Assembly: GCA_020184695.1 (NCBI GenBank)
Contig: JAANOX010000242.1
Coordinates: 124,001-188,000, forward strand
DNA: 64,000 nucleotides
DNA from: Histomonas meleagridis 2922-C6/04-290x
Lineage: Eukaryota > Protista > Parabasalia
Direction: 5' to 3'
The notes under the pieces are model-generated. The model searched no databases. It saw only the letters and a program-made list of their open reading frames with translations, and was not told where the DNA came from. Position 1 is the first letter of the stretch. Every line of letters starts with the position of its first letter. The position numbers and the translations under genes are program-made. This document shows, one piece after another, positions 4,497 to 48,726 of the stretch.

Positions 4497-6957
4497 ATGA
4501 CTGAAAGCACACAAACACTTGAATTAGAAAATGAGGCAAATAATGCATCAATCAAAAGCCAATCTATATATATGCAAAAGTTGATTTTTTTAGAACAGGT
4601 TATATTTAATCTCACAGAAAAAAACTTTGAAATTTCTGTCGCAAAAACAATGAATTTTTTTGACAAAGATATTCCTTTCACATTTAATTATTGTATAATT
4701 GTTTTAATTTATTTAGCATTTTCATCTCAAAGAGAATCAATCCAAACATATTTCAATTTTTTACAAGAAATTCAAACACAAGAAGAAGCAATTCTTCACA
4801 ATAATCCAAAAATTATTGAAATTTTTACTAATTATATATCAGAATTTAATACACAAGAGACATATTATATCATTGAAAAAATGATTGAAAACGAATTAAT
4901 TAATATAAATATTACCAAAAACTTTAATACCAATTATTTTGCACATTATAAAACAGAAGAAGAAAACAAGAAAAACGATTCTAAAGATTCATTCAATGAA
5001 GAATTTAAAAATAATTATGAAAAATTATCAAAGAATGATTGGGAACTTCATAAGCAATTAGTTAAAGAAGGAGTTAATCCGAATGAAATATCAAAAATCA
5101 TTCGAAATGATGATATAGAGAAACTTCAAGAAATATCAACACAAGAAGATTTCGATTTTAATCAAATCATTAAACCATCACTTTATGCACGATATTCATT
5201 TATTAACAAAGAAAATGTTACATTAATTGATTTTGCTGCATTTTTTGGAGCAATTCAATGTTTTAAATATTTATTATTGAACAACGCAAAAGTTGAAAAT
5301 ACAGGTAAATATGCAATTGCAGGTGGAAATCTTGAAATTATTTATTTATGTGAACAAAATCATTCGACATTTGACGATGTTTATGAAATAGCAATTAAAT
5401 TTCATCGAAATGACATCTTTAAATATATTTATGAAAACAAAATCGAAAAACTAGATCAAAACAATCAACAACATTTATTAACATATGTAATTACAAACAA
5501 AATTCCATTTAAAAACTTTGGATATTATATAAGTAACACACAAACATTAACTGATATTAAATTCCAAGAACAAATTTATCAATGTATTAATATTGGTAAT
5601 TATGAAATTCTTTCATTTTTAGAAGAAGAAATCAAATTCGATGAATATATAATTAATGTAACAGCAAAAACAGGTAATTTATATCTTGTCGAATATTTTC
5701 TTGAACATAATCAAATTCCGAAAAACATTTTAGTTTTTGCATTAGAATTGAACTTGTTCAGTATTATTAAACAAGAAGGGATTGATATTAATGCTAAAAA
5801 TATTAATTTGTTTGTATTAAAATATGTTTTAATGTTTTGATATTTTAAAATAATATTTGGAATTTTATTAAATTATTTAGAACATCTTTAATGATAGCAA
5901 CTATAAAAGGTTATATAGGAATTGTTCAATTTCTTATAGAACAAGAAGGAATTAACTTAAACTTAAAGATATTCGTATGCATTACACAAAATCGATATTA
6001 AAAATTTTGGGTTTTAAAAAATAATTTGGAATTTAATTATTAAATTTGATACCGCACTTTTATTGGCTTCGCAATATGATCAAACTGAAATATTTAAAAT
6101 ACTTCTTAAGAAAGAAGAAAACATTAATAACGTCAACATTGTTTTTGTTTATTTTATGTTAGTTACAATAAATTGATATTTTAAATATGTATTAGGTAAT
6201 TATTTTCAATATTTAAATCAATTTTATATTTTGAAACCGAAAAAAATCACATCTAAATGGTTAAATTACTTCTTGAGCAAGAAAAAATTGATATTAATGT
6301 TAAAGATGTTTATTTGTTTTATTTAATATATATTTCAACAATTTACAATTTAAAAACAATATTTGGAATTTAATTAAATTATTTAAAACGCCACTTATTA
6401 TAGCAGTTTCAAATAGATATTTTGAAATGGTTAAGTTACTTCTTGAACAAAAAGGAATTGATGTTAATGCTATAGATATTTAATCATTATTTACAAAATT
6501 TTAATATTTCCAAATAATATTTGGAAATTATTTAAATTATTTCAAACAGCACTTATTTTAGCATCTGAAAATGGTCATACAGAAATAGTTAAATTACTTC
6601 ATGAACAAAAAGGAATTGATATTAATGCTAAAGATATTTATTTGTTTTATTTAAAATTTATTTTAATAATTTAATATTTCAAAATAATATTTGGAAATTA
6701 TTTAAATTATTTTGGACAGCACTTATGAAAGCATCTAGAAATGGTTATACAGAAATAGTTAAATTACTTCTTGAACAAAAAGGAATTGATATTAATGCTA
6801 AAGATATTTATTTGTTTTATTTGGTATTTATTTTAATAATTTAATATTTCAAAATAATGATTGGAAATTATTTAAATTATCTGAAACAGCACTTATTTGG
6901 GCATCTTTAAATGGCCACAAAGAAATAGTTGATTTATTAAATTCTCAAACCGAATAA
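4497..6957 (+). pseudogene. Locus A: DUF3447 + ankyrin-repeat gene with 7 frame-breaking hairpin inserts; partly decayed
   Basis: DUF3447 motifs (LIDFAAFFGAIQCFKYLL, YAIAGGNLEIIYLCEQ, AIKFHRND). TAL-type blocks start at 5882, 6051, 6218, 6388, 6546, 6716, 6886; inserts are 80,80,80,80,68,80,80 nt. 1-nt deletion near 5960 and TAA at 6254-6256 lie inside coding blocks. Confidence 0.8.
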
Positions 6958-8187: not shown

Positions 8188-9300
8188 TTATATTTCGATG
8201 GTCAAAAAGTGCACAAAAATTGGTTTGTCTGTATGACCATTTGAAGATGCTAAAATAAGTGCTGTATCAAACAATTTAAATAATTTCAAAAATTATTTTG
8301 AAATATCAAATTATTAAAATAAATTTCAAATAAAACAAATAAATATCTTTAGCATTAATATCAATTCCTTCTTGTTCAAGAAGTAATTTAATTATTTCTG
8401 TATGACCATATTTACATACTATCATAAGTGCTGTACCAAATAATATAAATAATATCCAAATATTACCTCGAAACACAAAATTATTAAACCAAATATAAAA
8501 TAAAACATATAAATATCTTTAACATTAATATCAATTCCTTCTTGTTCAAGAAGTAATTTAACTATTTCTGTATGACCTTCTGAAGATGCTCTAATAAGTG
8601 CTGTCCAAAATAATTTAAATAATTTCCAAATATTATTTTGAAATATAAAATTATTATAATAAATATAAAACAAAACAAATAAATATCTTTAGCATTAATA
8701 TCAAATCCTTTTTGTTCAAGAAGTATTTTAACTATATCTGTATGTCCATTTCTAGATGCTTTCATAAGTGCTGTATAAAATATTTCTGAATTAAATGATA
8801 TAAATAATTTCCAATTAGTATTTTGAAATATAAAATTATTTATATGAATTTCAAATTAAATAAATGAATAACCCTTAACATTTAAAACAATTTCTTTTTG
8901 TGTGAGAAATAACTTAAAAATTTCTAAGTTGCCATAAATAGAAGCGAAAATTAATGCCGTTCTAAGTAATTAGAATAAATTCCTTACATGAAGTTTAAAT
9001 TCTAAAACATTGTAATGAAGATCAGATTGAATAAATAAATATCAGTATCATTAATATCAATCCCATTTTGTTTAAGAAGTAATTTAACTATTTCTATACT
9101 CCCATATATAGTTGCATACATAAGTGCTGTTTCGAAAAATTTAAATAATTTCCAAATGTTCATTTGGAATATTAAATCATTTAAATAAACATCAAACAAA
9201 ACAGATGAATATTTTGAGAATTAATATCAATTCCTTTTTGCTCATGAAGTAACTGAACTATTTCTATATTACTATCAAAAGATGCTTTTATAAGTGCTGT
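8188..9300 (-). repeat. Locus B: headless array of 7 ankyrin blocks separated by hairpin inserts
   Basis: Blocks start at 9300, 9130, 8960, 8774, 8604, 8434, 8265, all stop-free; inserts are 80,80,96,80,80,79 nt; no DUF3447 N-terminus found upstream. Confidence 0.85.
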
Positions 9301-9759
9301 ATTAAATAATATAAATAACTTCCAAATATTATTATCACTGAAAATATTTTTTATATAAATTATTAGGAATCAATATTCTGATGGTGAAAAAAGCAGATAG
9401 GGAAAGAGCTTTCAATTATTTTTAAACTGTTTTGTTTTCTATTATATTTTTTCTTGTTTTTTCCTTATATTTGAAATTTGTATGAATAGCTTGTAATTTT
9501 TTGTTTTTGTATTTTTATCATAATCTGATGTTTCTTATACTATCTAAATATAAATGTTCTAAAATACATCTTTATTTTAATTTGTATATAATAAAAATTT
9601 TATTGCAATAAAAGCAAAATCAAATGATTCAAATGCACTAACATAAATAATCACCACACAAACGCATAAAAAATTCATTTTCTAAAACAAAACAACAACA
9701 CATTAACAAAAAGTGTCATTTTGATGCGCTAATTAAAAATCAAAATTTTTGTAAATTTT

Positions 9760-14616: not shown

Positions 14617-14759
14617 ATGTTTGTATTCATAAAAATATATCATGCGAAAAAATATAAGAAATTGTGCTCTTCAAAATATGTTTCAAGTGCATAAATTTTT
14701 GGGTTTTGTGATTAAGGAGGCATTTTAGAAAAATATATCAAAAATGGATATGACTTTAT

Positions 14760-15487
14760 TGCTGGTCACGATTCAATCACATTAGAATTCCTTGAAGATG
14801 GTGAACCAATAGGCTTAACAAATGTATTCATTTTAATGGAGAAACTTCACCAGAAATCCAAAATGATGCATTTGTTAATATAAAAGCGACAAGAGTTATG
14901 ACGATAGAAACATATCAAAATGAAACATTTGGAAATATGGAAATTTCTAAGGGAACAACACTTGACGAATGTCTCCCGCCAACACTCACATTCACTAATT
15001 CCTATACATTTACTGAATCGGATTCACTAACTGCATCAGTTGCTTATTCATCTGATGTAACTTTATCTTTAACACATTAGTTCACTTTAACTCATTCATT
15101 ATCTGTTATATATCGACAAATGTCATTTATTACGATTACACTGTTATATATTATTCGTCTTATTACAGTTATTATTCTGACTTTTATACATTAGTTGTCA
15201 CTGATGTTACACCAAAAGATAATTCGATATCAAATGAATTGTTAATTGGTATTATATGCGGCGCTATTGTGATAGTTTTGATAATTGTCGGAATCGTAAT
15301 ATTTATGATTAAATATCAAAATAAGAAGCGAAAACAAAATGAAGAAGAAATGAATATTTCAGATGAAAATAATAATAAAATTAATGAAATAGATAATACA
15401 TTTTCGGTTGGGATTAATAATTCAAATATTGAAGAAGATCCATTTGCAGACGATTTCAAAGAAGAAAAATTTATCAGTCAGATATAA
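14760..15487 (+). pseudogene. 3' remnant of a BspA-like surface protein (end of LRR region, S/T stalk, TM, acidic tail)
   Basis: NGETSPEIQNDAF...YQNETFGNMEISKG, stalk TFTNSYTFTES with TAG, TM LIGIICGAIVIVLIIVGIVIF, tail EEDPFADDFKEEKF; frameshifts. Confidence 0.55.
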
Positions 15488-16294
15488 ATAAAATATTTTA
15501 AGAACAAAATATTTTAATTTGTTTATTAATTTAATAAATACGAACATTTTTGTTATTTAGCAAATTTTATGTTTCTTCTATTATAGTAAATCCAATTTAT
15601 CCAAATCATAAACAGTAAAAGTAAATGATAAATTATATTAAAGAAAAAATTGGAAATTTAGAGATATTATGGTAAAAATACACTATTTTTTTAAAAATCA
15701 AAAGAAAGATATTCCAATTTCAAATAAGTGTTCGTCTTTAGTAGTTCTGCTTTTTTTAGTATAGACCATGGTCAGCTGGATGTATGAAAGCTTACAATTT
15801 TAATTGAAAAATGAAAGAAGAAAGTTGTATGCATCCACCACCACTTCAAAAATTTGTTTTAACTATAATTGTTCACACCATTTTATTATACCTTTTTCCT
15901 TATACATATCCACACATTGTCATAGCATCCTTTTGTCGGAATGAATTGACATAATTTATTTTCAGACAAAAAATTGATGTAATTAATGGCTAACTAAATT
16001 TGTTTGAATTATGTATACATGTATATGTATGCAAAAAAAGTCGAATGATTTTACAACAATGATTTTGTTGTAAGGGGGAAATGTAATTGAAATTTCTCTT
16101 TATTTCACTTTAAACAATTTCTTTTTATTTCAAATTATGTAACCAAACAACTTCAAAGCTCATTAAAATATGTTACGTGTTTTAAAAATTCTTTAACTTT
16201 TTATATTTGTTTATTCAATAAGTTTTTTAGAATGATATCAATTCTTTACCAAAATGGAAAGAATTCCATTTGATCATTTGCTTTATCTGTTATA

Positions 16295-19200
16295 TCATCT
16301 TGGATTCTTTCTTTTTTACGAAACATTTCAATTATTTCGGTATAATCATTTTCTTTTGCGAACATGTATGCTGTAAAAAATACTTTATATAATTTTCAAA
16401 GATGATATTAAATTAAAAAAAATTTGAATAAACATTAAGCTTTATTAACAACCATCTTTAGCATTTATATCAATTCCTTCTTGTTCAAGTAATATCTTTA
16501 CTATTTCTATGTGACCATTTTCAGAAGCAAACATAAGAGCGGTTTTAAATATATATAATATTTTCCAAATATTTTTTTGATATATGAAATTGTTAAAACA
16601 AATATTAAAATAAATACATAATCATTTTTGGTATTTATATCAACACCTTTTTGTGGAAGAAGTAATTTAACTATTTCAGTATGTCCACTTTGAGATGCTA
16701 ATATAAGAGGTGTATTAAATAACAAAAATAATTTCCATAAAAAAATTTAAAACATCAAATTATTTGTGAGAATGTTTTATAAAATTAATAAATACTTTGA
16801 GTATTAATATCAATTTCTTCTTGTTTAAATAATATTTTGATTATTTTCTTGAAACCATTATTATAATTTGCATACATAAATGCGTTCCAAAGTAATTTGA
16901 ATTAGTTCCAAATATTATTTTAAATTATCAAATAAATGAAATGTTTATTTTCTATATTGAATAAATATTTTTAATATTGATATCAATTCCTTTTTGCTCG
17001 ATTAGTAATTTAAATAATTCGATATTTCCTCTTTGAGAGGCTGTAATAAGTGCTGTATTAAATATTTTAAATATTTTCCAAATATTATTTTGAAATATAA
17101 AATTATCTAAATAAATATTAAATAAAATAAATAAATACTTTTAGCATTAATATCAATTCCTTCTTGTTCAAGAAGTAATTTAACGATTTCTATATAGAGT
17201 AGCGGGAAAAACCACTTTAAATCAGGAAAAAACCCTTTAAATCGAATAACTATATTTAGCATCAAGACTAGCAAACAGCTATCCTTTCTAGCTTATTGCT
17301 TGCTACAAACAATATTTTTGATTTTTTAGAATAAAGATAATGAATTGATTGTATGCAATTAATAAAATACTCAATAGTAATTGTCTAAATTGATCTTTTT
17401 TGTTCCTTAGTAAAACAGGGAACCTAGATGGGTCCCTCGGGTAACCGATAGCGGAGGCTAGTGCACTAAAAAGCAGGTTTCTCAATTTTTCCTTATTTTT
17501 TGCAACTTTATCATGATAAGATTGTTTTATTAAACGATTTCCCATCTGATAAAAAAACAGAAAGCTTTAGAATCTGTGATCTTATTCTCTTCTCACAAGA
17601 TTAAAAATTGAATAGACTCATAGGGGATATTCACAATATATTCGTTATGACGATGCATGCTTTTTATTACTTTTTGCTAAATTTACTCCAGTTTTTCATA
17701 GAGGGACCCTAAAGGGGTTTTTCCCGGCTTAGAGGTATTTTTCCCGGTACTCTAACCTTCTTCATTAGCTCTAACAAGTGCTGTTTTAAATAATTTGAAT
17801 AATTTCCAAATATTATATTGAAATATCATTTTATCTAAATAAATATCAAATAAAACAAATAAATATCTTTAGCATTAATATCAATTCCTTCTTGTTCAAG
17901 AAGTAATTCAACTATTTCTGTATAACCATTATAAGATGCATTCATAAGTGCTGTTCTAAATAATTAAAATAATTTCCAAATATTGTTTTGAAATCATAAA
18001 TTATTAAAATAAAATCCAAATAAAATAAATAAATATCTTTAGCATTAATATCAATTCCTTCTTGTTCAAGAAGTAATTTGACTATTTCTATATAACCTTC
18101 TTCAGATGCTCTAACAAGTGCTGTTTTAAATAATTTGAATAATTTCCAAATATTATATTGAAATATCATTTTATCTAAATAAATATCATATAAAATAAAT
18201 AAATATCTTTAGCATTAATATCAATTCCTTCTTGTTCAAGAAGTAATTTAACGTTTTCTATATGACCATTTTCACATGCATACATAAGTGCTGTATTAAA
18301 TATTTTAAATATTTTCCAAATATTATTTTGAAATATAAAATTATTAAAATAAATATTAAATAAAATAAATAAATACTTTTAGCATTAATATCAATTCCTT
18401 CTTGTATTAAAATATATTTAACAAGTTCAATATTTCCTGACTCTAATGAAAATACTAAAATATCTTTCGGAATTTGATTACTTTCAAGAAAATGTTTAAT
18501 GAGAAATATGTTTCCAATTTTTGTTGATTCATTAATAATGTTTTCGCAAATTAGCATCCCTTCTTTTTGTAAAAATATAAAAATTTCATAATTATGAGAT
18601 GAAATACACTTCTTTCCAAATTCTTCTAAATTATTAATTTCAGCAATTTCATTCTCATAAAGATATTTAAAAATATCATTTCGATGAAACTTAATTGCTG
18701 TTTCATATGCACCTTCAAATGTTGAATGATTTTGTTCACATAAATGAATAATTTCTTTATTTCCACCTGCAACTGCATATTTACCTGTATTTTTTATATC
18801 CGAACCATTCATAAGTAAATATTTAAAACATTTAATTGATCCGAAAAATGCTGCATAATCAATTAATGTAACATTTCTTTGATTAACAAATGAATATCTT
18901 TCATATATTGATGATTCAATTGCTTGATTAAAATCAAAATCATTTTGTGATGATACTTCTTGAAGTTTTTCTATTTCATCTTTTCGAATTATTTTTGCAA
19001 TTTCATTCGGATTTTCTCGCTCTTCAATTAATTTCTTATGAAGTTCCCAATCATTCTTTGAAAGTTCTTCAAAGTTTCCCATATTTCGTTTCAAATATTT
19101 ATTTTTTTCTAGAAATTTTTTGGACATGTAATGTATAAAATATGATTCTTTTCTCATCTGTTTAACTATGTTTGATTCGCATAAATTTTCTTGAATCATT

Positions 19201-19514
19201 CTCTCAAGAAAATAATTTGATTCTTGAGAATATATATTTAAAATCATTTGTAAAAAAACTTTATGTATTTTTCTTTGAATCTGTTTGTTATCTTCAAATT
19301 TTTTTATTTCTTTAATGAAATTCATATAGACTTCTAAATCATTCATACCTGCTACAAATGATGAATAAATTATTTGACTAATAAGTAAGTTAAATGAATA
19401 CTGATAATTATTATCAAGTATATCAAACACTGAAATAGCTGCTTGAACAACATTTTCTTTATTTAAGGAAAATATTTTTTGTTGAATAAACTGAATTGTT
19501 TCCCAATTGTTCAT
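16295..19514 (-). CDS. Locus C: DUF3447 + ankyrin-repeat gene with 9 hairpin inserts, one block split by a MITE
   Basis: N-terminal ORF reaches ...EGIDINAKS at 18375. Blocks start at 18294, 18124, 17954, 17784, 17056, 16886, 16713, 16543, 16374; inserts are 8 x 80 nt and 1 x 79 nt; terminal TGA 16295-16297. Confidence 0.75.
17197..17752. mobile_element. 556-bp non-autonomous TIR element (MITE), TA target duplication
   Basis: TA at 17195-96 and 17753-54. Imperfect ~43-bp TIRs GAGTAGCGGGAAAAACCACTTTAA.../...TTAGAGGTATTTTTCCCGGTACTC. Removing it restores GGT TAT ATA GAA ATC and the 170-bp period. Confidence 0.92.
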
Positions 19515-19653
19515 TTTGTTTTATAGTACCGGACAAGCAAACCTAGTGAAAATCTTTTCGCCCTTATCGGCACAGAAAGTTATATTTTAACGGCCCCGAT
19601 AAACTTATAAGGGGGTTTATGAACATTTAAAATTTGTAAACGTATATAAAATA

Positions 19654-21088
19654 AACTCATCTCCAAAAATCCGTAACCTCTTTCTACTTTTGAAAGTAAT
19701 TCGATGGTTTATCCTTACGGATTTTTGGTTAACTTACAATAATCAAAAAGTAGAAAAAATTTATTGAATTACAAAATTTAATGCAAAATGTTTGGGTGCT
19801 GTATTAGTGGCTAATATTTTGCATCGGGTGTTGTATCAGGAACTTGTAACGACTTTCAATCTCTGGGGGCGTCCGATTGACGAAAAATTTCGATATTTTG
19901 ATAAAATCGTCTCCAAATTGTGAATGATATATCATTATCATATGGTTATCAAAAAACGTCCAAGGGTTATCTGCACTCAAATATGTTTGGTATTTTCTGA
20001 TATTAGTATCGATTGGTAATTTATGACTGGCAACTAGAAATTGTATTGTTTTCCCATTATTGTCTAAACATGCAAGGATTCTCGCCCTAAATGAAAGAAC
20101 AAGTTTGTTGATAGTACTCATAATAATGAAATCCCAGCATTGAACAAGATATTGTATAACTTCATCTATATTTTTTGGGTTGTGTGCATTAACGAAATGT
20201 TTTAATATACCCCACAGGTTTTCTATTGGGAACAGATCACAACTATTTGGTGGCCAATTATTTAACCAAACGCACATCGCATTGAGAAAATCTTTCGTAT
20301 AATAATAGGTATGAGATGGTGCTCCATCTTGTTGCCATATCCATTGACGTTGGCCAAAAATGTGATCAAGTGTGGTAAATACTGAATGAGTTTATAAAAT
20401 TTCAACATACTTTTTTGAATTTTCGGTTCCATATATATAAATTAAATCGCTTTTATAATTGACCTCAATAGCTGCAAATGCCATAACTCCTTTTGGAAAT
20501 TTTTCTTTTAATGCTATAATCTGATCTGAGGTTTCACCGTTTTTCCGCCAAACCCATTTCCCGTCTGACCTTAAACAAAACCGCGATTCGTCGGAATAAA
20601 TCATTTTGTCGTATCGAAAATTAAGGTCATTTAGTATATCTGTTGAAAAATTTATGCGTTTTGATATTTGTTGTTCACTTAAATTTTGACACACTTTACA
20701 AGGTTTCCAGTTATACTTAAGTTTGTGCCTTGCTCTATTCATCGAAGTTGGAGATAAAGGTAAAATCAATGATAATGATCTATCACTAATCGTCGGATCA
20801 GCAGACGTAAAAGCATCAACTTGTTGCATCATTGAATCTGTAAGCTTTGTTGGCCTTCCTCTTTGTGCTGGAGAAAAACATTTTTTATTTTGTTTATAGT
20901 AATTTGAAGTTTTATTAATTCTTTCATTACTACAATGACAAACATGTGAAATAAATTTGATTGTGTTCCCTTTGTTTTTAATATTTAAAATGTTCCATTC
21001 TTTGGATTTCGATGGGTCATATCCTTCGTATTCCATCTAAATGACTTTTGAATTGCTATTTGGTCTTACGGATTTTCGGTAATAAGTT
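19654..21088 (-). mobile_element. Tc1-like DNA transposon (degenerate)
   Basis: Contains a DD34E transposase. Candidate 23-bp TIRs AACTCATCTCCAAAAATCCGTAA (19654-76) and the reverse complement of 21066-88 (AACTTATTACCGAAAATCCGTAA; 4 mismatches), each flanked by TA. Boundaries tentative. Confidence 0.65.
19804..21036 (-). pseudogene. Tc1 transposase (DD34E) with one premature TAA and a C-terminal Myb-like extension
   Basis: IYSDESRF ... WQQDGAPSH-(34 aa)-PIENLW; the two track ORFs are in the same frame, separated only by TAA at 20392-20394. Confidence 0.88.
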
Positions 21089-21365
21089 TAGATAAATTTA
21101 TGTATCCAATTTTATAATAGACTACAAAAATTGAAAATTTAAATTTCACCATTTTGTTAGCAGATAAAAAGTGACAGAAATTTGATTGTAAATATGAAAA
21201 AATATTGAAATCTAATTCCATTTTTTTTTCCTGGGACAGAAAATATGTAAAAATTTATATTTATTTTCATTTTTAGTTGTCGTTCCACAATGAGAAAACA
21301 CAAAATATTTCATTACATTAAAATGTTAATTTATTATTATTATACGTTTTATATTTTTTTTTTTT

Positions 21366-21881
21366 TCATTTTCTCTTTATTGCTTCCATTATTTTTATGT
21401 AAAATGGCCATATTAAACCTAATGCAAGGGATCCCAATGTTACCAACGTCTGCAACACAGCCACGATATGACTCGAAGTGAATTTTGCGATTTTTTGATC
21501 AATTCGACTTGTGTATTCGACTGCATCTCTGTTTGAATTATACCATTTTTCCTTAATACAATCTATTGTACCATTAACATCTTTAATGACAATTGTCATA
21601 GAAATCATTTTCGTCGATAATTTCTTCAATTTGTTGACAAAAACATACAATTGTTTTAACGAAATTTTGTATTTCATTTAATTCATTTCCAATTTTTATA
21701 TGTTCTTCATAACTATCAATAAGTCCTTCGATGTCATCAATGTTTGGATTAATGTTTTGTGTCTCGAAAAACGAATAAACATTTTCATAATCAAATGTCG
21801 AACATTCATAAGCCGTATATAATAAGATAATTCTGCTATATTATCTGGATTATCAAATTCTGATGAAATAATTTGAAACAA
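21366..21881 (-). pseudogene. Fragmented hypothetical gene
   Basis: Two adjacent protein-like ORF pieces (21696-21881, 21366-21677); no recognisable family. Confidence 0.25.
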
Positions 21882-22483
21882 AAATATGATTTAAAATTAT
21901 TAATATGTATACATCATTGGGGTGTGGCAATTCAGTAAATAATTATTTTAAATTAATGTGTAATTTAAGTACTCTGCCGTGAAAAACCTGTAGATGACAA
22001 CAAATTAATTTAATGATGGAAGAAATGGCACCTTTGCACGAGGAAAAGTCAAAGGAAATTGATGAAGAGGAAGAAAATGCTGAGCTTTGATTAAAGCAAA
22101 AATTTTCTTTTTTCCAAAGAATCACTTAAATAAACACTAAATACTGACTCTTTGTAATGAGTTTTAATTAGAGATAAATTATACAATCTGAAATTTTAAC
22201 ATATGTTCAGTCCCGAAAATATTGCGAAATTTACAAAATTAAATCGAAAAAAAATTATTAAATATATATTACTAAATATGTTCTCTATGAATAATGCTAC
22301 AGTGTAGACGTGGGTTATAATAAGGTGTTAGTCTATATGTTTTTCATTGCAGTCTATATTTATAATGTATTAATACTTTATCTAAAGAAATTGTTTTATA
22401 CTTCAAACACATAACAAAAATGAATAATATTATTATATAATAACGTCAAAAAAAATAATAAAATTTGAAGAAATTATTATTTA

Positions 22484-23362
22484 TTAAAAAGTAACAGAAT
22501 TATCTAAAAATGAATCAGTTTCATTTTCGGGAAAACAAAATCCATTAATTTCGGTATTATTAAACAAAAACAAGAAATCGCCCAAAAAAACAGTGGTGTT
22601 TGGAACCATTTCGTTTGGAAGTTCTTTGTTCCATAAAACAAATCGATTTGTTTCATCATTAGATGTCGATGCTTTAATAATTTTATTCGGGATTATTTCT
22701 TCCTTTATTATATTATCTTCTTCCATGTCATATAATGTAAATTTACTTTCAGATATAATAATTAATTTATTTTCATTAATTTTGAAATTTAAAACTTTCT
22801 CGCCAACAGAAAAAGTGCAAACTTTTTGTTCGCCTTTGAATATTTGAATAAAACCGTTGACACAACCGACAACGATATAATTTCTTGATGATGAAAGAGC
22901 AGTTATAACACTTGGAATTTTGTAAATTATTTCTGAATCATCTGTAGAAATAGCAAGAGTGAAATCATCACCAGTAGAAACAATAAGGTTTGAATCAATA
23001 CAAGATACAAATTGTGCATTGTTTTTGAAATGGTAAATTTTTTCATCACTTACAATTTTGTATGAAACACCTCTGACTGCTTTGTCGTAGTCAAGAAGAA
23101 TTCTATGAATGGAACCATCTGAACATGAAAGAGCAATCACTCTTGGATTATAATCTGATGTACTAATGTCATTTATTTTCGATCCGATTTTAAAATGTTT
23201 TACAAAATTTAGTGTGCTTTTAATTTGATCAAAATATAATAATGATAAAAAATATCCATTAGATGCCCAGACTTCACCTGATCCCTTTGACGAGAAAACC
23301 TTGTTTATTTGATTACTGAGTTGATTACTTGGAAGGGGATCAAACGGAGAGAGTTCTCCCAT
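22484..23362 (-). CDS. Hypothetical WD40/beta-propeller-like protein
   Basis: 292-aa ORF; INDISTSDYNPRVIALSCSDGSI, ITALSSSRNYIVVGCVNGFIQIF. Confidence 0.65.
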   Translation of the reverse strand: MGELSPFDPLPSNQLSNQINKVFSSKGSGEVWASNGYFLSLLYFDQIKSTLNFVKHFKIGSKINDISTSDYNPRVIALSCSDGSIHRILLDYDKAVRGVSYKIVSDEKIYHFKNNAQFVSCIDSNLIVSTGDDFTLAISTDDSEIIYKIPSVITALSSSRNYIVVGCVNGFIQIFKGEQKVCTFSVGEKVLNFKINENKLIIISESKFTLYDMEEDNIIKEEIIPNKIIKASTSNDETNRFVLWNKELPNEMVPNTTVFLGDFLFLFNNTEINGFCFPENETDSFLDNSVTF

Positions 23363-24052
23363 TTTGACACTTTTATTTTAAACGGCTGTTCTATGGTTGT
23401 AACTGAAAATACCGTTTATTTTATAAACTATAGAATTTTATTTTTAATTTTTCTTGTTCTTCTAAACTAAAGTTTAATATTTTTGAAAAAACTTAAATCG
23501 ATAACGGAAAGGCTTTAATGTAAATATTCCAATTTTACTTGAATTATAAATAGTTTCAACAGTTACAACACCAAATAAATTTTCAATTCCTTCTAAGAAA
23601 ATTAACGTTAATTTTTGTTTGTTTTATCATTTTAATTTTAATATTCTAATTAGATTTAATAATAATCATCCCATTGATATTACATAACAAATCGAATGAT
23701 AAAATTGTGAATTATTTTTAAACAGCATTGATTATTAGGATCTTATCTTTCAATCGAATAAAACAGAATTAATCGAAGAGATATTTTTTTTTTACATAAT
23801 TATAATTGTGTTACATTTTTATTTTGATCACTATTAGAATCAAATAATATCAATAAATTAAGGAAACAAACCAGACACGTAAAGGTGCATCTATCTATGT
23901 ATAAATTTTTACAGTTAAAATATTAATATTATTATTAATGAAATTTCTAAAGCAAAAAAACATTACTTTTTATATTCTTTTATTGAAAATTGATTATATT
24001 AATAATTACTCCATGTCAATGTCAATAAATATAAAAATATTTATCATTATTG

Positions 24053-27000
24053 TTATTTTGTCTTTTTCAAAAATCTAAATATAGTTAATTCATAATTTAA
24101 TTTTTGTTCATCATATTCGATACCATCAATTTCCTTAAGGAGATTCACAATTTCTTTTTTCTTTTCTTTAGCTGCAATTAAAATTGCTGTATCAAATAAT
24201 TTTAATAATTTCCAAGTATTGTTATAAAACATCAAAATAGAACAACAAAAATTAAATTACGTAAAAAGATATTTTTAGCATTAACATTAATTCCTTCTTG
24301 TTCAAGAAGTAATTTAACTGTTTCTATGCAGCCATTTCTAGAAGCAATCATAAGTGCTGTATAAAATATTTTAAATAATTTCCAAATATTATTTTGAAAT
24401 CCAAAATTATCAAAATTAATTTTAAATAAAAAAAATAAACGTTTTTGGCATTAATGTCAATTCCTTTTTGTTCAAGAAGTAATTTAACGATTTCTGTACG
24501 ACCATTTGAAAATGCTAAAATAAGTGCTGTATTATATAATTTAAATAATTTTCAAATATTATTTTGAAATATTAAATTATTAAAATAAATTTTAAATAAA
24601 ACAAATAAATATCTTTAGCATTGATATCAATTCCTTCTTGTTCAAGAAGTAATTGAACTATTTCTGTATGACCATAATAAGATGCATTCATAAGTGCTGT
24701 TCTAAATAATTAAAATAATTTCCAAATATTATTTTGAAATATTAAATTATGAAAATAAATTCTAAATAAAACAAATAAATATCTTTAGCATTAATATCAA
24801 TTCCTTCTTGTTCAAGAAGTAATTTAATTACTTCTATATTACCTTTATAAGATGCAAATATAAGTGGTGTTTCAAATAATATTCATTATCTCCAAATAAT
24901 AATATCATATATTAAAATATAAAAATAAAAATTAAATGAAAGAATCAAACATTTTTAGCACTAACATCAAAACAATTTTGGTCAAGAAGGAATTTAAGTG
25001 TATCTATATGTCCATTTCTAGAAGCATACATAAGTGCTGTATCAAGATATTTAAAAAAATTTCTTTAATTATTTTGAAACATTAAAAGATTGGAACAATT
25101 ATTAAACAAATTATATATACATTTTTCAAAGTTATATCATTTCCTTCTTGTTCAAAAATTAATTTAAAAGTTTCAAAGTTAACATTTGATGCTGCTGCCA
25201 TAAGTGCTGTTTCAAATATTATAAACAAATTCCATATATATTTATGATATATTAAATTATATAGACAAAAATTATTTACGAAAAATAAATATTTTTTATA
25301 TGAATATCAATCTTTTTTTGATCAAGAAGTAATTTAACTAACTCTGGCTTGCAGTATCTAGCTGCATATATAATTGCTGTATTAAATAACTCCAATAATT
25401 TCCATATGTTTTGCTAAAATATCAAATAATTGATACAAATATTAAATGATGTATATAAATATCAGTGGAATTAATATCAATACCTTCATTTTCAAGAATC
25501 AGTTTAACTTTTTCTATTCTATCAAACCTGCATGCTGTCATAAGTATTGTCATAAATAATTTGAATAATTTCCAAATTATATTTTGAAATATCATAATAT
25601 TAAAATATATTTTAATTAAAACAAACAAATATCTTTATCATTAATGTCGATTTCTTGATGTTCAAGAAATAATTTAAATATTTTTTCAACATTTGTTTGC
25701 ATTAAAACTGTTTTAAATAATTTTAATAATTTCCAAATATTATTTTGAAATATTAAATTATGAAAATAAATTCTAAATAAAAGAAATAAATATCTTTAGC
25801 ATTGATATCAATTCCTTCTTGTTCAAGAAGTGATTTAACTATTTCTGTATGACCATTTTCAGATGCTAAAATAAGTGCTGTTTGAAATAATTTAAATAAT
25901 TTCCAAATATTGTTTTGAAATCATAAATTATTAAAATAAAATCCAAATAAAATAAATAAATATCTTTAGCATTAATATCAATTCCTTCTTGTTCAAGAAG
26001 TAATTCAACTATTTCTGTATGACCATAATAAGATGCATTCATAAGTGCTGTTCTAAATAATTAAAATAATTTCCAAATATTATTTTGAAATATTAAATTA
26101 TGAAAATAAATTCTAAATAAAACAAATAAATATCTTTAGCATTAATATCAATTCCTTCTTGTTCAAGAAGTAATTTAACGTTTTCAATATGACCTTTTTC
26201 AGATGCTTTCATAAGTGCTGTATTAAATACTTCAAATAATTTCCAAATATTATTTTGAAATATAAAATCATTAAAATAAATTCCAAATAAAACAAATAAA
26301 TATCTTTAGCATTAATATCAATTCCTTCTTGTTCAAGAAGGAGTTTAATCATATCTACATTATCGTTTTTAGATGCTGCCATAAGTGCTGTATTAAGCAA
26401 TTTGAATAAATTTCAAATATTATTTTGAAATATCACATTAATGAATAAAATTACATATAAAATTTATAAATATCTTTGTAATTTATATTATATTTCTTAT
26501 TTTCGATTAAATATTTTGCAACATGAATTTTGTCAAATTTGGCTGCTTTTATAAGTGCTTCCTTATAATGATTAAATAAATTTTAAATATGAATATGAAA
26601 TTCCAAAATATTAAAATAAATTAAATGAAAAAGTTAAAAACAAAATCATCTTCTTCAAATTCATCTGGGTAATCTAATAGTAATTCTACAAGTTCAATGT
26701 TTCCATTTTCAATTGCACAATCAAGTTCATTCTCAAAAAAATTTTAGAAATCATTTCAATGAGACAAAAGTAATCCCATTTCCTATTCTAATTCCTTTGA
26801 TTCCAAGAAGCATTTTAACAATTTCTGTATTTCCATTTTGACATGCATATGTTAATTCTGTATTAAATGAATAAAATGAATACCAAAAATTTAAATGATA
26901 CAGGATTTTTTTATAAAAAATATCAAAAATTAATAATAAACTTCAAAAAAGTAAATTTTACAATAAAAAATCAAAAGTAATATGTAAAGCATAAATATAA

Positions 27001-28579
27001 ATATTTTTTTGTTGAAGAAGTAATTTTACAATTTCTGGATAACCTTTTATACATGCAATTTGAAGTGATGTATGAAAAATACAAAAAAAATTCCAAATTT
27101 TATTTTGAAATATTAAATCTATTTCGTTCAAATAGAAGATAAAAACTACACAATCATTAACATCAATATTATCTTGTTCAAGAAGATATTTAACAATTTC
27201 AGTACAACCATTTTCTGTTGCATAAGTTAATGCAGTATGTTTAGAAACACCATTTGGTGATACATATAAATGAAATTAATACTAAAATGTTCATTAATAT
27301 TATTAATACCTTTTTCTTCAATAAGATATTTAACAAGTTCAACATTTCCTGAACCTGATGCAAGTACTAAAATATTTGGTGGAATATTATCTTTATTAAG
27401 AAAATCTTTGATAAGATACAAATTACCATGGATCGCTGATTCACGAATAATATCATTAATCTCAATTTTATCTTCTAAAAATGAAAAAATTTGATAATTA
27501 TGATATTGAATACATTTTATTATGTCACTTATATTTTTGTTTTTGATTCTTTCAAAAATTTCCAACGATTTCGTTGGAAAATCAAAATTCATTTGAATTT
27601 TTTTAATCATTTCTAAATTTATAGAATTTTCTTGATTGCCTTTTTCTAAATTTTCTAAATTATTTTCATAAAGATATTTAAAGATATCATTTCGATGAAA
27701 CTTAATTGCTGTTTCATATGCACCTTCAAATGTTGAATGATTTTGTTCACATAAATGAATAATTTCTTTATTTCCACCTGCAACTGCATATTTACCTGTA
27801 TTTTTTATATCCGAACCATTCATAAGTAAATATTTAAAACATTTAATTGAACCAAAAAATGCTGCATAATCAATTAATGTAACATTTCTTTGATTAACAA
27901 ATGAATATCTTTCATATATTGATGATTCAATTGCTTGATTAAAATCAAAATCATTTTGTGATGATATTTCTTGAAGTTTTTCTATTTCATCTTTTCGAAT
28001 TATTTTTGCAATTTCATTCGGATTTTCTCCCTCTTCAATTAATTGTTTATGAAGTTTCCAATCATTTTTCGAAAGTTCGTCAAAGTGATAATAAAAATTA
28101 TTGAAAAAATCAGATGATAATTTTTTTATTTCATGAATTTCTTCATCTTTTAGAAGGTGTGCAAAATAGAGCTTTTTAAAATTATATGTAAAATTTAAAT
28201 TTTTTATATCATATAAATTATGTTCAATTAGTTTTTCCGTGATAAAATATGATTCATTTGTTTCAGATGTAACAATAAAGTTTATGAACATGTTGATTAT
28301 ATTTGAAATATTTGGATTGATTTTTTTTTCTTTGATTTCAAGAATTTGCATAAATTTTAAATAAATTTCAAAATTTTTCCTATGTGAAACAAAAGAGTAA
28401 TATACCATTTGGGATATCATAAAATTAAATGTATATGAAAATTCCTCATCATAAGTGTTCATTATTAATTCAACTGAAGATTCAACATTATTATCATCTA
28501 GGCTAAAAATAATTTGAACCATATTGCTTAATTTATTAAGGCATTCGAATTTAACCATCCAGTAAAAATGCTCGACCAT
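24053..28579 (-). CDS. Locus D: DUF3447 + 19 further ankyrin blocks, each preceded by an insert
   Basis: Blocks start at 27236, 27071, 26861, 26731, 26561, 26391, 26221, 26051, 25881, 25711, 25550, 25380, 25210, 25040, 24870, 24700, 24530, 24360, 24190, all stop-free. Inserts are 50, 75, 120, 40 nt, then 15 x 80 nt. Normal C-terminus ending TAA at 24053. Confidence 0.8.
24190..26731 (-). repeat. 170-bp tandem array (90-nt ankyrin block + 80-nt insert)
   Basis: The taagtgctgt-type motif recurs every 170 bp (one 161-bp unit due to a 9-nt in-frame deletion). Confidence 0.95.
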
Positions 28580-28815
28580 GAGTGAATAAAGTATTGAAAC
28601 ATAAACGTCAAATTATGACGAACATCAGAATCACATTACTTGAAATTAAATAATAAACGGCACAACGATAAATTTAACGTTCTTTCAAAAGTTGATGATC
28701 GATATCGTCGTTATCGTCAAATTTATAACGATACGCCAATATAAACTGGCATTTTTTTTTGTGAATTTTGATAGGATTGTTTTTCGTGGTTTGAATATCA
28801 CTTAACATTTGAGTG

Positions 28816-31800
28816 ATGCTTGTTTCAGAAAGAAATGAGCACGAATTCACTAAGGAAGAACAACGTCGTATCATTGATTCTCTTGACTTGTTCGAAATTT
28901 CAGAAAAAAATATACATAAAGGAAAATTCTGTATTGATAGAGGAATCATCAAATACACAGGACAAATCGTTGCAATGAAAAGAGCCTTAACAGAAGATTC
29001 ATATAAATCACTTGTTAATGAATTCAAGACGTTATGTAAATTATCACATCCAGCAGTCCAATCATTAGTTGGTTTTTATTCCAATCCTGATTACAAAAAG
29101 GCAGTTCTTATTACCCCGTTTTATATTAATGGTACTTTACGTAACATCATTAATTCACCTCCTTCAGAATGGAATTTACTTACAAAAACTATGATTATCT
29201 TTGGAATTGCTACTGGTTTAAAGTATCTTCATGAGAAAGGTATAATACATCATGATCTTAAATGATAATATTCTCATTGATGATAACTTTCATCCAATTA
29301 TTGCAGGTTTTGGTGATTCACATAAAAATCCTAAAGGAGAACTAATGTTCACACTTCCATATATTGCACCTGAAGTTTTATCAGGAGGACAATATACACC
29401 AAAAACTGATGTATATTCATTTGGGCTTCTTGTAAATGAAATTTTTTCTGGATCTCCTCCTTATAAAGGTTTGAGTAATCAACAAATTAATGAGAACATT
29501 GCGGATGGTAATCCTCCTCAAATAGCATCTAAAATCCCGGATTTATTCAAAAAAATATTTATGAAATGCATTAAAAAGGATCCAAGTAAAAGGACAAAAT
29601 CAAAGGATATATTTAAGAAGATAAAGAATGGCCTTGATGATTTACAAGTTAATAGATCAGTTCTTGACACATATAAAAATCAATTATTGGATTCAGCATT
29701 ATGTCCATTAAATAATTTTATTATTCCAACACCTTTAATTGAACTTCCTGGAAAACCACATCCAACGAATAAAGAAGGATCTTATCCAATATTATTAGAT
29801 GTATTTGAGTCTGTTTTGAAAAAAGCAGGAGATAGATCAATTGTTTTGGTGATGCTCTTTGGTCCATATCAATCAGGAAAATCTACATTTCTTCGGACAC
29901 TTACTGGAAACGCGGCATTTTATGCAGGTAAGGGTATAAAAAGTCAAACACAAGGAATTTTAATTGATGGTCCATATATTGTTTCTGATTTAATTAATAG
30001 GCTTGATGATAATTATTGTCAACTAAAAGAGAAATGTAATTCACTTGATATTGATAAGGATACGGCAATGTTTTTCATTGATTCACAAGGTATTGGCGAT
30101 GAAGATTATGAATTAAATCTTAAACCAGTATTGGATAAAGTTAATTCAGTATTTACATCAATAACAACAATATGTCTTACTGTATCTAATTTCAATGATA
30201 AAGTTGATGATATGAAAACAATATTAACAACAATTCGTCGTGCACAACTTTCTTCATCTTTTCCATTATCAAAAGTTTATTTTCTTGTGAAAAAATATCA
30301 AGACCTAAATAATGTTTTGCATTTAATGGATCCTGAAGAATATAAAGTAAATATTTCTGGATTTACAAAATTATGGTGGAATGAGCATAATATTGCAAAA
30401 AACCTTTATAGGCCAGATTCATTAATGCCATTGCCACTCGGAGATGTTGAACATAATTATCCTGGTTATGTTAATACAGTGTACCAAAGTTTATATTATA
30501 TTTTAAGTTCCATACCTAAAGTAAAATTTGAATCCGACCAATACATACAAGCACTGAAATATAGTTCTTATCCATTATTTGATCCATACTTTATGAACTT
30601 TATGAATCTTGTTTTGAGATTTGAAAATGAAAAAATACCAAATACACTTGACTCATCTCTTAGATATTGTTGTTCATGTTGTATGCTTCTTAATACAATG
30701 ATCACAGCAGAAATAAATTCTATTTCTAAATTTGATGATCTAAAAGAAAAAAGAGAGAATTTAGAAGGATTAATTAATATTAATACAAATATTGTATTGC
30801 CATATATTTTAGGGAGTGAAGAAATACCATTCGTTGACTTTAACCAGTATGTATGCGAAATTAAAAGTGATGTCCGTTCATATTTTTATGCAAATAAGGC
30901 AAAATCTCAAAGCACAACATTTAACCAAATTATAAAATTTTATGCTGATGTCTGGAGTGATATTGCAATAAATGCATACAAGCCAATAAACAAAGTAATT
31001 GGATATATTCCGGTTATCAGAACAATTGCAAATGTTTATTATAATGGTGTAATAATTTTAGGAAAGAGTATACTATCGTTGTTTTATGAAGGAAATAAAA
31101 CACATGAATATGATTCCACAACAACCTTATATCCTTATATTTGGGAAAGAGACATTAGAGAAAGAAAATTTAGTGTAATTGATATGGGTCAAATTACAAA
31201 AAGATTGGTTAAAAGTGATCAACCATTATATGTATTTTATGATCAACCGAATCATGATTCAACACTTCTTTTTCAATCTTTAACAGGTATAAAACTTGAT
31301 GCAAAAGATGATAAATATATAATACTTCATGATAATGTTACTTTATCAAAAGTGATAACAAGATTTGAACGCTATTCCAAAAAACGAACATCTACACTTC
31401 CTTCACAAATAAATTTCATCTATGCTAAAGGCATTAATGAAGAAGAACTTCGCAAGATCGAATCTACACAAGGAGTAAACACAATTTTTATTACGTCCTT
31501 TAAAGAAGGTGAGCGTTTAACAGTCTTACCGAAAAATGTACAAATGTTAAATGCTTTTATATTATCAGATAATTATTTTCATTGGGGCGTATATAAATTA
31601 TTTTATAAGAAGGAAATGTGGCGCGTAAATAACTATTATAATGGAATCAATAGAAAATCTGTTAAATTTTTGCCAATTTATGCATCTGATTATCAATTTG
31701 ATAAACATGGACCTCGATGCGTTACATCAATTAAATACGGGTGCAGATATATACTCAAGGATCCCAACTTAGTCTTGAAAAGTGATGAAATCAGAGAATT

Positions 31801-31837
31801 TGAAACAAGTACACTGGATTATGAGCCAAATAAATAA
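28816..31837 (+). pseudogene. TKL-type (pseudo)kinase fused to a GBP/atlastin-like P-loop GTPase; frameshift in the catalytic loop
   Basis: GQIVAMKR, HHDLK|DNIL (2 nt missing after 29262), YIAPE, DVYSFG; then GPYQSGKSTFL and FFIDSQG. Confidence 0.7.
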
Positions 31838-47142: not shown

Positions 47143-47400
47143 CAACAACAATAAAATAATTAAAAAAAACTTATTCTAACTTATTTATAAAAAGTAAAAG
47201 CATAATTATAAGTGATTATGAGAAAATTGTTTTTTGTTCCTGTCTTCTAAATTTTTTACAAGAATAAAATATTACTTCTTGTTGTATTCACAAATATAAT
47301 AAAAAACGTACATATAACACCAGACATGTAACAAAACTCAAATGATATAATAGACTCTTGAAAGAAGAAGTGAATTAAAAAAATACGTTAAGAGCTTTTA

Positions 47401-48726
47401 ATGGAACAAGACGAAACATCCGAATTTTCCGAATCAAGTGCACCTTCAAGATTGATATCTTTTCCTCTTTCGGAAACAATGGATGACTCTTTAATTTCAA
47501 CAGAAAATCAAACTGAAATTGATACAAGTGATGATTCTTTCGCTTTACAATCCGAAGATAGTGACACTCTAGAACTCCTCCTTTTAGATCATATTACAGA
47601 TAAATTGCTTCTTTCCAAAATGAACCAAAGATGGAAAGAATCTGTAAATAAAAAAATCAAAAAAAGGGAGACATTTTATTTTTCCTTAACACAACCAAAT
47701 TTTGACGTTGATATACGAGCAGATTCACTCAAACATTTCCACCATTTAGAAAAAATTAATCAAATTTTCAGAATATTTAGGCATGAAATCTCAATTTCCA
47801 GACAAGCCAGAACAGTTAATTTTATTCTCCAAAGACGAAAAATCAGTAAATATTTTTGTTTATGGAAGTCAAGATTAATTACTAAAATTCAAAAACAAAC
47901 GAAACAAAAATCACAAAAACTCCAATCGCTTCACTCTATTCGTCTTCCAGATCTCATCAAAAAACTGCATATTTTAGTTTCGAAACAAGCTGAACTTGAA
48001 ACAATTTTAGAAACCAAAGAAACAGAAGAAACGAATTTAATAGAAATATACAAAACACAAAAACGAGAAAATGAACAACTTCGCAAACTCGTTGCGATTG
48101 AAGAAACAGAAAACAAAAGAATTTCAACTTTAAAGGAAAATATTGTTAAAAATTACGAAGATCAAATTGCAACTTTACGCATTTCATTACGTAAAGAAAT
48201 CGATCCAACGAACGAAATAATTAATGAAAGTCGAGAAAAACTTAAGAACCAACTTAAAATTAAAGAAGTTTCATCAATGTCTATTGATAATAATCAAAAT
48301 ATAATTCATAAGAAAATGAAATTTATTAAAGATAAACTGAACGAAGCGCGTGAAATCGCAATGGAGAAAAGATTAGAATTAATAAGTAATGAAGAAGAAC
48401 AAAACGAATTAACTCAAAATATTTTGGAATTAAAAAATGAGATCAAGAAATTGAATAATTATTGCGAATTAATTACAAAAAATAAAAAATCAAATGATGA
48501 AATATCAGAAAAAAATTTAAAACATTTAAATAATGTATATGCGGAACTAAATAAACAGTTAAAAAACGCAAATAAAAAAATTAAAGAATATGAAGAAGAA
48601 CTAAAAAATCAAGATATAAGAATAGATACAATGAATAGAGAATTAATAATTGTTAAACAAAGAGCAAGAACTGTCTCGGAAGCATTCACAGAGAATCTTT
48701 ATTCGGATTCATCGAATTTTGGTTAA
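47401..48726 (+). CDS. Coiled-coil protein
   Basis: 441-aa ORF with long heptad region. Confidence 0.75.
   Translation: MEQDETSEFSESSAPSRLISFPLSETMDDSLISTENQTEIDTSDDSFALQSEDSDTLELLLLDHITDKLLLSKMNQRWKESVNKKIKKRETFYFSLTQPNFDVDIRADSLKHFHHLEKINQIFRIFRHEISISRQARTVNFILQRRKISKYFCLWKSRLITKIQKQTKQKSQKLQSLHSIRLPDLIKKLHILVSKQAELETILETKETEETNLIEIYKTQKRENEQLRKLVAIEETENKRISTLKENIVKNYEDQIATLRISLRKEIDPTNEIINESREKLKNQLKIKEVSSMSIDNNQNIIHKKMKFIKDKLNEAREIAMEKRLELISNEEEQNELTQNILELKNEIKKLNNYCELITKNKKSNDEISEKNLKHLNNVYAELNKQLKNANKKIKEYEEELKNQDIRIDTMNRELIIVKQRARTVSEAFTENLYSDSSNFG

Follow-up and report, generated by a model that had tools for sequence, protein, structure and literature searches.

We analysed a window of 64,000 nucleotides (nt) of the Histomonas meleagridis genome (assembly GCA_020184695.1, contig JAANOX010000242.1, positions 124,001 to 188,000, forward strand), in which four ankyrin-repeat loci, here called A to D, carry a short A+T-rich insert after their repeats. 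The assignment agrees with exact matches to its HSP70 and RCC1 products and with the accession stated in PMC8529796. Our results suggest a type of ultra-short intron that has not been described before and is missed by current annotation: locus D and its paralogues A to C are probably expressed DUF3447-ankyrin genes whose linkers are split by introns of exactly 17 nt. Each 80-nt insert would then consist of four 17-nt elements, each followed by a 3-nt codon, and not of a single hairpin insert as an earlier sequence-only reading had proposed. Our confidence refers to this explanation as a whole, i.e. an expressed gene together with linkers split by ultra-short introns. The elements are present in genomic DNA and missing from assembled RNA, their removal is precise and restores the reading frame, and both their length and their position are conserved. 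The loci, and the parts of locus D referred to below, are the following (window positions).

Locus A, 4497 to 6957, plus strand: paralogous gene with DUF3447 and Ank, linker architecture as in locus D, without annotation in the public record.
Locus B, 8188 to 9300, minus strand: ankyrin array with the linker architecture of locus D, without the DUF3447 5' part, unannotated.
Locus C, 16295 to 19514, minus strand: paralogous gene with the architecture of locus D, interrupted by a transposon-like insertion, unannotated.
Locus D, 24053 to 28579, minus strand: DUF3447-ankyrin gene, ATG at 28579, stop TAA at 24055-24053.
Locus D, uninterrupted 5' coding part, 27281 to 28579, minus strand: contains DUF3447 and the initial ankyrin repeats and ends where the first 17-nt element starts.
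Locus D, 170-nt tandem array, 24167 to 26477, minus strand: made up of 14 standard units of 90 nt (block) and 80 nt (linker region).

When the loci were displayed row by row, 90-nt ankyrin blocks (x-TAL..ASxxGHxEIV.LLLEQEGIDINAKD) alternated with inserts of roughly 85% A+T, giving a tandem unit of 170 nt (90 + 80). Tandem Repeats Finder, applied to the window, reported arrays of this period at 5770-6898, 8228-9333, 17776-18405 and 24167-26477. The frame-breaking inserts that the sequence-only reading had described at four loci were readily recovered and match its consensus, at least 31 of them being exactly 80 nt long, in addition to a relic near 1007. Most inserts are closed by stops in the upstream frame. 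The claim that the DUF3447 N-terminus is intact at loci A, C and D is in line with Pfam matches to DUF3447 and Ank on the 5' open reading frames (ORFs) of all three. These domains, and the 34-residue repeats obtained on removal of the elements, place the products among the DUF3447 ankyrin proteins. The first base of the insert is mostly A with a minority of G, and a T precedes the downstream block, so that no GT...AG pair is found at usable positions. Insert positions 18-20, 38-40 and 78-80 vary between copies while a GGA at 58-60 is conserved, and based on this pattern a 20-nt lattice was proposed.

To compare RNA with DNA, we placed assembled contigs (Logan) from three RNA runs and from an Illumina DNA run on positions 24000-28700. 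In all three RNA runs, contigs matched consecutive locus-specific blocks at 0 mismatches and skipped the inserts. One layout comprised 25553-25460, 8 letters, 25383-25290, 8 letters and 25213-25121, and a second one 26865-26776, 7 letters, 26734-26642, 9 letters and 26564-26472. Skips of 76, 76, 77 and 41 nt were thus accompanied by 8, 8, 9 and 7 unplaced letters, respectively. The period was 101-102 nt in RNA compared with 169-170 nt in DNA. A standard unit thus loses 68 nt net, which yields a 34-residue repeat, and the 41-nt junction loses 34 nt. This is in good agreement with the 68 nt per repeat that the sequence-only reading had expected to be removed. RNA coverage extended from about 40 nt upstream of the ATG (~28617) to about 100 nt beyond the stop codon, the intergenic stretch upstream of locus D being silent in the RNA runs; these borders fit the expectation for a transcript. 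In DNA run X1, a single unbranched contig (24803-25592) passed through five inserts at a depth of 641, with flanking single-copy DNA contigs at ~520-670, which makes a second uninterrupted genomic copy of these blocks very unlikely. Two RNA contig starts coincided with element borders. One contig (X6 record 13) begins at 24193 and another (X7 record 18) at 24214, and one of the two keeps the fourth element of the last junction. This contig looks like a processing intermediate and, as a single element is retained in it, we infer that each element is removed independently. An exon query against protein databases (1.84 billion representatives) returned generic ankyrins only, and a protein database search with a 105-residue stop-free stretch gave no relevant match.

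The 7-9 letters left between the RNA pieces occur on neither flank of the skipped segments, which rules out a single intron. Removal of the 80-nt insert as one unit, as the sequence-only reading had it, therefore gave way to four 17-nt elements set between four linker codons. Taking out the four 17-mers leaves x-x-G-x, which is the linker of the canonical ankyrin motif D-x-x-G-x-T-A-L, and mature linkers are expected to resemble D-RNGR-TAL, in place of the junction peptide DILFR-TAL suggested earlier. The junctions were parsed as follows.

J1, 25384 to 25460, minus strand: elements 25460-25444, 25440-25424, 25420-25404 and 25400-25384.
J1 exons, minus strand: AAT (25443-25441), GAT (25423-25421), GGA (25403-25401), then AAT (25383-25381); predicted linker N-D-G-N.
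J2, 25214 to 25290, minus strand: elements 25290-25274, 25270-25254, 25250-25234 and 25230-25214.
J2 codons, minus strand: AAT, AAT, GGA, then GAA (25213-25211); predicted linker N-N-G-E.
J4, 26735 to 26775, minus strand: elements 26775-26759 and 26751-26735 around a 7-nt exon, TGAAATG (26758-26752).
J5, 26565 to 26641, minus strand: elements 26641-26625, 26621-26605, 26601-26585 and 26581-26565, the first of which starts with GT.
J5 codons, minus strand: TTA, GGA, AAA, then AAG (26564-26562).
Last junction, 24194 to 24270, minus strand: elements 24270-24254, 24250-24234, 24230-24214 and 24210-24194; codons AAT, GAT, GGA and GAT.

All seven constraints that the RNA placed on the junctions were satisfied by the lattice. 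At J1, RNA records 9, 14 and 19 end at 25460 and restart at 25383, and at J2 the pieces end at 25290 and restart at 25213, with 8 letters between them in both cases; the first linker letter is A, which makes the upstream piece one letter longer, and the second letter is not T. RNA records 10, 15 and 20 carry 9 letters between 26642 and 26564 at J5. Here, and likewise at the junction near 25120, G is excluded as the first linker letter, in agreement with the lattice. The first linker letter is not A at J6 (predicted GTA), the 26471 junction starts with G and hence shows no upstream extension, and at J7 (26865) the letter before x4 is T, derived from GGT. At J4, 41 nt are skipped with 7 letters between, which parses as 17 + 7 + 17 with the first element in codon phase 2. 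Under the lattice, the letters predicted for the junctions are AATGATGGAAAT for J1, AATAATGGAGAA for J2, GG-TGAAATG-GAG for J4, TTAGGAAAAAAG for J5 and GTAGATGAAAAT for the 26471 junction. At the 5' end of the interrupted part, one 17-nt removal (17 = 2 mod 3) links the frame of the 5' ORF to the ...SPNGVSKHTAL frame, the exact place of this first element of locus D being ambiguous (about 27264-27280). A further linker region (27062-27142, 81 nt) is open in frame. Read-through would add 27 codons, and loss of three elements would leave 10; the frame is kept either way, and alternative products from this region are possible.

Independent sequence tests of the lattice were based on 39 distinct units, which were taken from the window, from a paralogue located upstream and from relatives in metagenomes. 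None of the 156 lattice codons was a stop, Gly occupied x3 in 36 of the 39 units and x2 was N or D in 23, resulting in linkers such as RNGR, NDGN and KDGW. Out of 18 registers tested, the lattice as well as registers 1 and 16 were stop-free while the other fifteen contained 1-76 stops; Gly at x3 was given by the lattice register alone and was missing from registers 1 and 16. Base composition differed accordingly, with 29% G in lattice codons and 4% in elements, and 21% T in codons compared with 58% in elements. Joining 14 junctions under the lattice gave 519 residues without a stop, of which 502 could be aligned with an uninterrupted ankyrin protein at 3 gaps and 335 bits; five rival cuts reached 294, 278, 270, 263 and 262 bits, with stops in four of them. 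For the whole of locus D, removal of 69-72 elements resulted in one open frame of 1100-1117 residues from ATG to TAA. Frame restoration by dynamic programming with a weight matrix fitted most junctions but over- or under-spliced depending on the penalty, which is why the 20-nt lattice combined with RNA constraints was used. Divergence between units was 0.24 for the 17-mers, 0.30 for coding blocks and 0.39 for linker codons. The lower value for the 17-mers is compatible with constraint on the elements, and their low sequence complexity contributes as well.

The 17-nt element has the consensus RTTTA-N8-ATTT. Position 1 is A in 74%, G in 16% and T in 9%. T prevails at positions 2-4 (~80-90%) and A at position 14 (75%), followed by T at positions 15-17; C (about 5%) and G (4%) are scarce overall, with T making up 58%. 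Their first two bases are mostly AT or AA, with GT in 18 of 156, and the last two are TT in ~80% and never AG. Many elements, including those that lie between GGA and TGG, GAA or CAA, leave no room for a shift of the register. Of the features of U2-type introns, neither the 5' GT (rarely GC) nor the 3' AG is found, while removal from pre-mRNA with precise exon joining is seen at the contig level, where the frame is restored. CTAAC was sought in all listed units and found in none, and the trichomonad motif ACTAAC(ACACAG) is likewise missing. This agrees with the earlier remark that neither GT-AG nor CTAAC stands at usable positions. U12-type introns carry a 5' ATATCC, the branch site TCCTTAAC and a 3' AC or AG. 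These motifs are absent from the elements, whose consensus reads ATTTATTT...ATTT. An Rfam search gave no match. The hairpin of the sequence-only reading was not confirmed: the folding of six inserts was not superior to that of shuffled sequences (z = -1.6 to +1.4), and its UUUCAA/UUGGAA stem is mostly invariant, does not covary and is missing in a distant relative. In structure-defined introns (bulge-helix-bulge, IRE1-type, euglenid nonconventional), conserved pairing positions the cut sites. Here, only A-U-rich, mostly invariant helices were found, none of them conserved in the distant relative, although 17-nt A/U sequences give little power for such an analysis.

In a standard repeat, each of the four linker codons (x1 x2 Gly x4) would be preceded by one 17-nt element, and each element would be excised independently from the pre-mRNA, post-transcriptionally. 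As the sequence of the elements drifts between species but their length of 17 nt stays the same, they may be cut out by a length-measuring machinery. On balance, we prefer a spliceosome with very relaxed requirements for terminal dinucleotides. A dedicated endonuclease and ligase is a less likely alternative that we nevertheless take seriously, and the probability remaining after these two options was assigned to the rival explanations discussed below. The start, a purine followed by T, is reminiscent of GT and AT donors, and ciliates splice introns of 15-20 nt; the TT 3' end, the missing branch motif and exons of 3 nt, in contrast, speak for an unusual mechanism. Going beyond the loci in the window, we are inclined to believe, albeit with less confidence than in the explanation of locus D, that a lineage-specific system in Histomonas and its relatives removes U-rich segments with a measured length of 17 nt from coding sequence, hundreds to thousands of them, does so without GT-AG signals and can leave single-codon exons behind. 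This statement covers both routes, i.e. a radically relaxed spliceosome as well as a non-spliceosomal endonuclease-ligase acting on nuclear mRNAs.

Several points weigh against introns of exactly 17 nt. The RNA data consist of assembled contigs, not of reads, and the labelling of the runs as RNA is itself a guess. The 7-9 linker letters in the locus D contigs were deduced from constraints and not read directly, and the junctions near 27280 and at 27150-27090 as well as the 120-nt region 27002-26865 were solved only by a frame-restoring search and are ambiguous. In the assembly of another strain, a different ankyrin gene carries one element of apparently 19 nt between GGA and TGG (contig WSYJ01000157.1; L007 4318-4336); it contains a run of six T, so that either a homopolymer error or a genuine difference in length could account for it. 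The ratio of nonsynonymous to synonymous substitution rates (dN/dS) between repeat blocks is ~0.77, which says little. To our knowledge, 3-nt exons between 17-nt introns without GT-AG are also unprecedented for the spliceosome.

One alternative assumes a single 9-nt microexon (ATATTTGGA, I-F-G, insert positions 52-60) between introns of 51 and 17 nt. It yields the right net removal of 68 nt, fits J1, J5 and J7, and has a synonymous-looking variant, ATATTCGGT, in a relative. However, it predicts a 2-letter upstream extension at J2 and J6, where 1 and 0 letters were observed, places a TAA stop in the 25592 unit, scores 294 bits with one stop against the 335 bits of the lattice in the comparison with uninterrupted ankyrins, and explains neither the 41-nt junction nor the G/A-rich variable positions 18-20 and 38-40, so that we consider it improbable. 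Other cuts were tried and rejected. A single 71-nt GT...AG intron (insert 9-79) is available only in some copies and gives a 33- instead of a 34-residue repeat as well as 270 bits and a stop, and AT-AC borders or shifted acceptors inside ACAG are out of frame. Enumeration of all possible single microexons gave no fixed position that suits every junction, and those of 9 nt that end in TGG, GGA or GGAA cannot be placed so as to satisfy J1, J2, J5, J6 and J7 together.

The loci could also be amplified pseudogenes, with the RNA derived from uninterrupted paralogues elsewhere in the genome. The family is indeed very large, with summed contig depths of up to ~9x10^5 (RNA run X4) and 3.8x10^6 (DNA run X1) for consensus-like repeats, the dN/dS between repeats is near 0.8 and locus C contains a transposon. 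Yet RNA contigs match three consecutive divergent, locus-specific blocks at 0 mismatches, the DNA contig over the same blocks is unbranched and of single-copy depth, and the 20-nt lattice with its canonical linker codons free of stops is conserved across species, which would not be expected of junk. With RNA contigs that skip the inserts, the loci are not dead (dead, amplified pseudogenes being the outcome named beforehand as refuting the sequence-only reading), and we regard a pseudogene origin as still less probable than the microexon. Removal from the DNA of a transcribed copy, comparable to the internal eliminated sequences of ciliates, would suit pieces that are short, A+T-rich and precisely bounded. 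In the DNA run, however, the segments are present at full depth (at the contig level, where rare excised forms are possible), no insert-less joints were seen among those counted, the count being incomplete, and the single element retained in one RNA contig resembles a processing intermediate; this leaves DNA excision as a very remote option. We give the least credit to the idea that the segments remain in the mRNA and are skipped in translation by ribosomal bypass or serial frameshifting. Many units have an insert that is open in the downstream frame, and bypass systems such as T4 gene 60 keep their coding gap in the mRNA, but here the RNA contigs lack the segments and show a period of 102 nt. 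From the routes listed in the sequence-only reading, non-GT-AG removal is thus supported by RNA, whereas ribosomal bypass and DNA excision conflict with the missing segments in RNA and the single-copy depth of the DNA contig, respectively.

The arrangement favored here, single codons between 17-nt elements, extends beyond locus D. Metagenome contigs in ENA contain N-terminal DUF3447 ORFs that are 41-49% identical at the protein level to the 5' ORF of locus D. In these relatives the 80-nt lattice is kept while the element sequences have strongly diverged, with G, A or T as the first base and GGA or GGT as the Gly codon. The ankyrin gene of the other strain's assembly mentioned above, which is the locus of an annotated paralogue, has ordinary uninterrupted linkers beside linkers with elements, and in some of the latter one or two 17-nt elements adjoin the Gly codon. 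A further unannotated DUF3447 paralogue lies ~1-2.3 kilobases (kb) upstream of the window start (L001 6480-7750, minus strand); it has one terminal ankyrin unit behind an 80-nt lattice linker region with the predicted linker K-Y-G-E. On the contig of one metagenomic relative (L003 4380-5279), a DDE_Tnp_IS1595 transposase gene is located ~2.3 kb downstream of the ankyrin gene. We also scanned the window for frame-restoring 17-mers outside the ankyrin loci and obtained one doubtful match at 47384. Removal of this 17-mer (47368-47384, minus strand) would join open frames of 69 and 37 codons antisense to an ORF at 47401-48726, and the match is probably due to chance.

Full-text literature searches found no description of such elements. 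Among ultra-short canonical introns, those of the ciliates Stentor and Paramecium measure about 15-16 and about 20-30 nt, respectively, and those of the Bigelowiella nucleomorph 18-21 nt. They resemble the Histomonas elements in being tiny, A+T-rich and of very narrow length range, and show that splicing at such a size is physically possible, but they have GT...AG borders and a branch adenosine, are spread over all genes and do not form single-codon tandems. Bypass elements, such as that of phage T4 gene 60 and the mitochondrial 'byps' of Magnusiomyces, are likewise short, frame-breaking inserts read as truncations by gene callers; they stay in the mRNA, whereas the Histomonas elements are absent from RNA. 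Microexons known so far are rare, stand alone and lie between long canonical introns, and a likeness exists insofar as exons of 3 and 7 nt are implied here.

Within the same phylum, introns of Trichomonas vaginalis fall into types A and B, both GT...AG with an extended motif at the 5' end and with ACTAACACACAG, 12 nt long, as branch and 3' motif (PMC12316389, PMC6260720). Only 63 have been confirmed genome-wide, all of them GT/AG, by a pipeline that filters out junctions without GT/AG motifs (PMC12316389), and such motif-filtering pipelines would miss a system of the present kind by design. Similarities include removal from pre-mRNA, a higher A+T content than in exons and the short, uniform length of type B introns of 23-25 nt (PMC12316389, PMC6260720). 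In contrast, the Histomonas elements are 17 nt long, start with A in 74%, end in TT, lack ACTAAC and occur ~70 times in one gene, down to 3 nt apart. The nonconventional introns of euglenids, diplonemids and Fritillaria are also without GT-AG borders and removed from nuclear pre-mRNA (PMC11170887, PMC12621601). These are of variable length, with ends that are often base-paired or transposon-derived (PMC11170887, PMC12621601), whereas the elements described here have a fixed length of 17 nt and no significant pairing was found.

For H. meleagridis, the genome paper reported 573-638 introns and at most one per gene (PMC8529796), compared with about 70 elements in locus D alone. If true, the elements would be among the shortest introns known, the first fixed-length class without GT-AG and the first to give runs of 3-nt exons, with a bearing on splice-site definition and on intron gain in lineages held to be intron-poor. 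A large surface-repeat gene family of this poultry pathogen would, in addition, be mis-annotated, with paralogues either unannotated or truncated at the first element. Our annotation look-up covered two NCBI assemblies of H. meleagridis, in which gene models are missing for loci A, B and C and the product of the truncated 5' ORF of locus D is absent from the public record, while annotated paralogues terminate in read-through junk, e.g. ...SRDKFICLNFLVFF. The prediction that annotation would hide the system was therefore well founded.

Apart from these genes, locus C contains an element of ~560 base pairs (17195-17754) inside an ankyrin coding block (GAAGGTTA|...|TATATAGAAATC). It has terminal inverted repeats of 45 nt (80% complementary) as well as a duplicated TA and resembles a non-autonomous Tc1/mariner-type transposon, by which the gene is disrupted. 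Annotation of the assembly seems sparse well beyond the ankyrin loci: no gene was called in the 10 kb from 14617 to 24616, and in an exact look-up the products of the long ORFs 20395-21036 and 22487-23362 were not on record. The same applies to the product of a protein-kinase gene at 28813-31837, which consists of two overlapping ORFs with a break near 29262 in the HxDLK...NILID motif (GATCTTAAATGATAATATTCTC). Considered as a canonical intron for comparison, this break was rejected, being a frame defect of 1-2 nt and not a 17-nt element, and it reflects either a pseudogene or an assembly indel.

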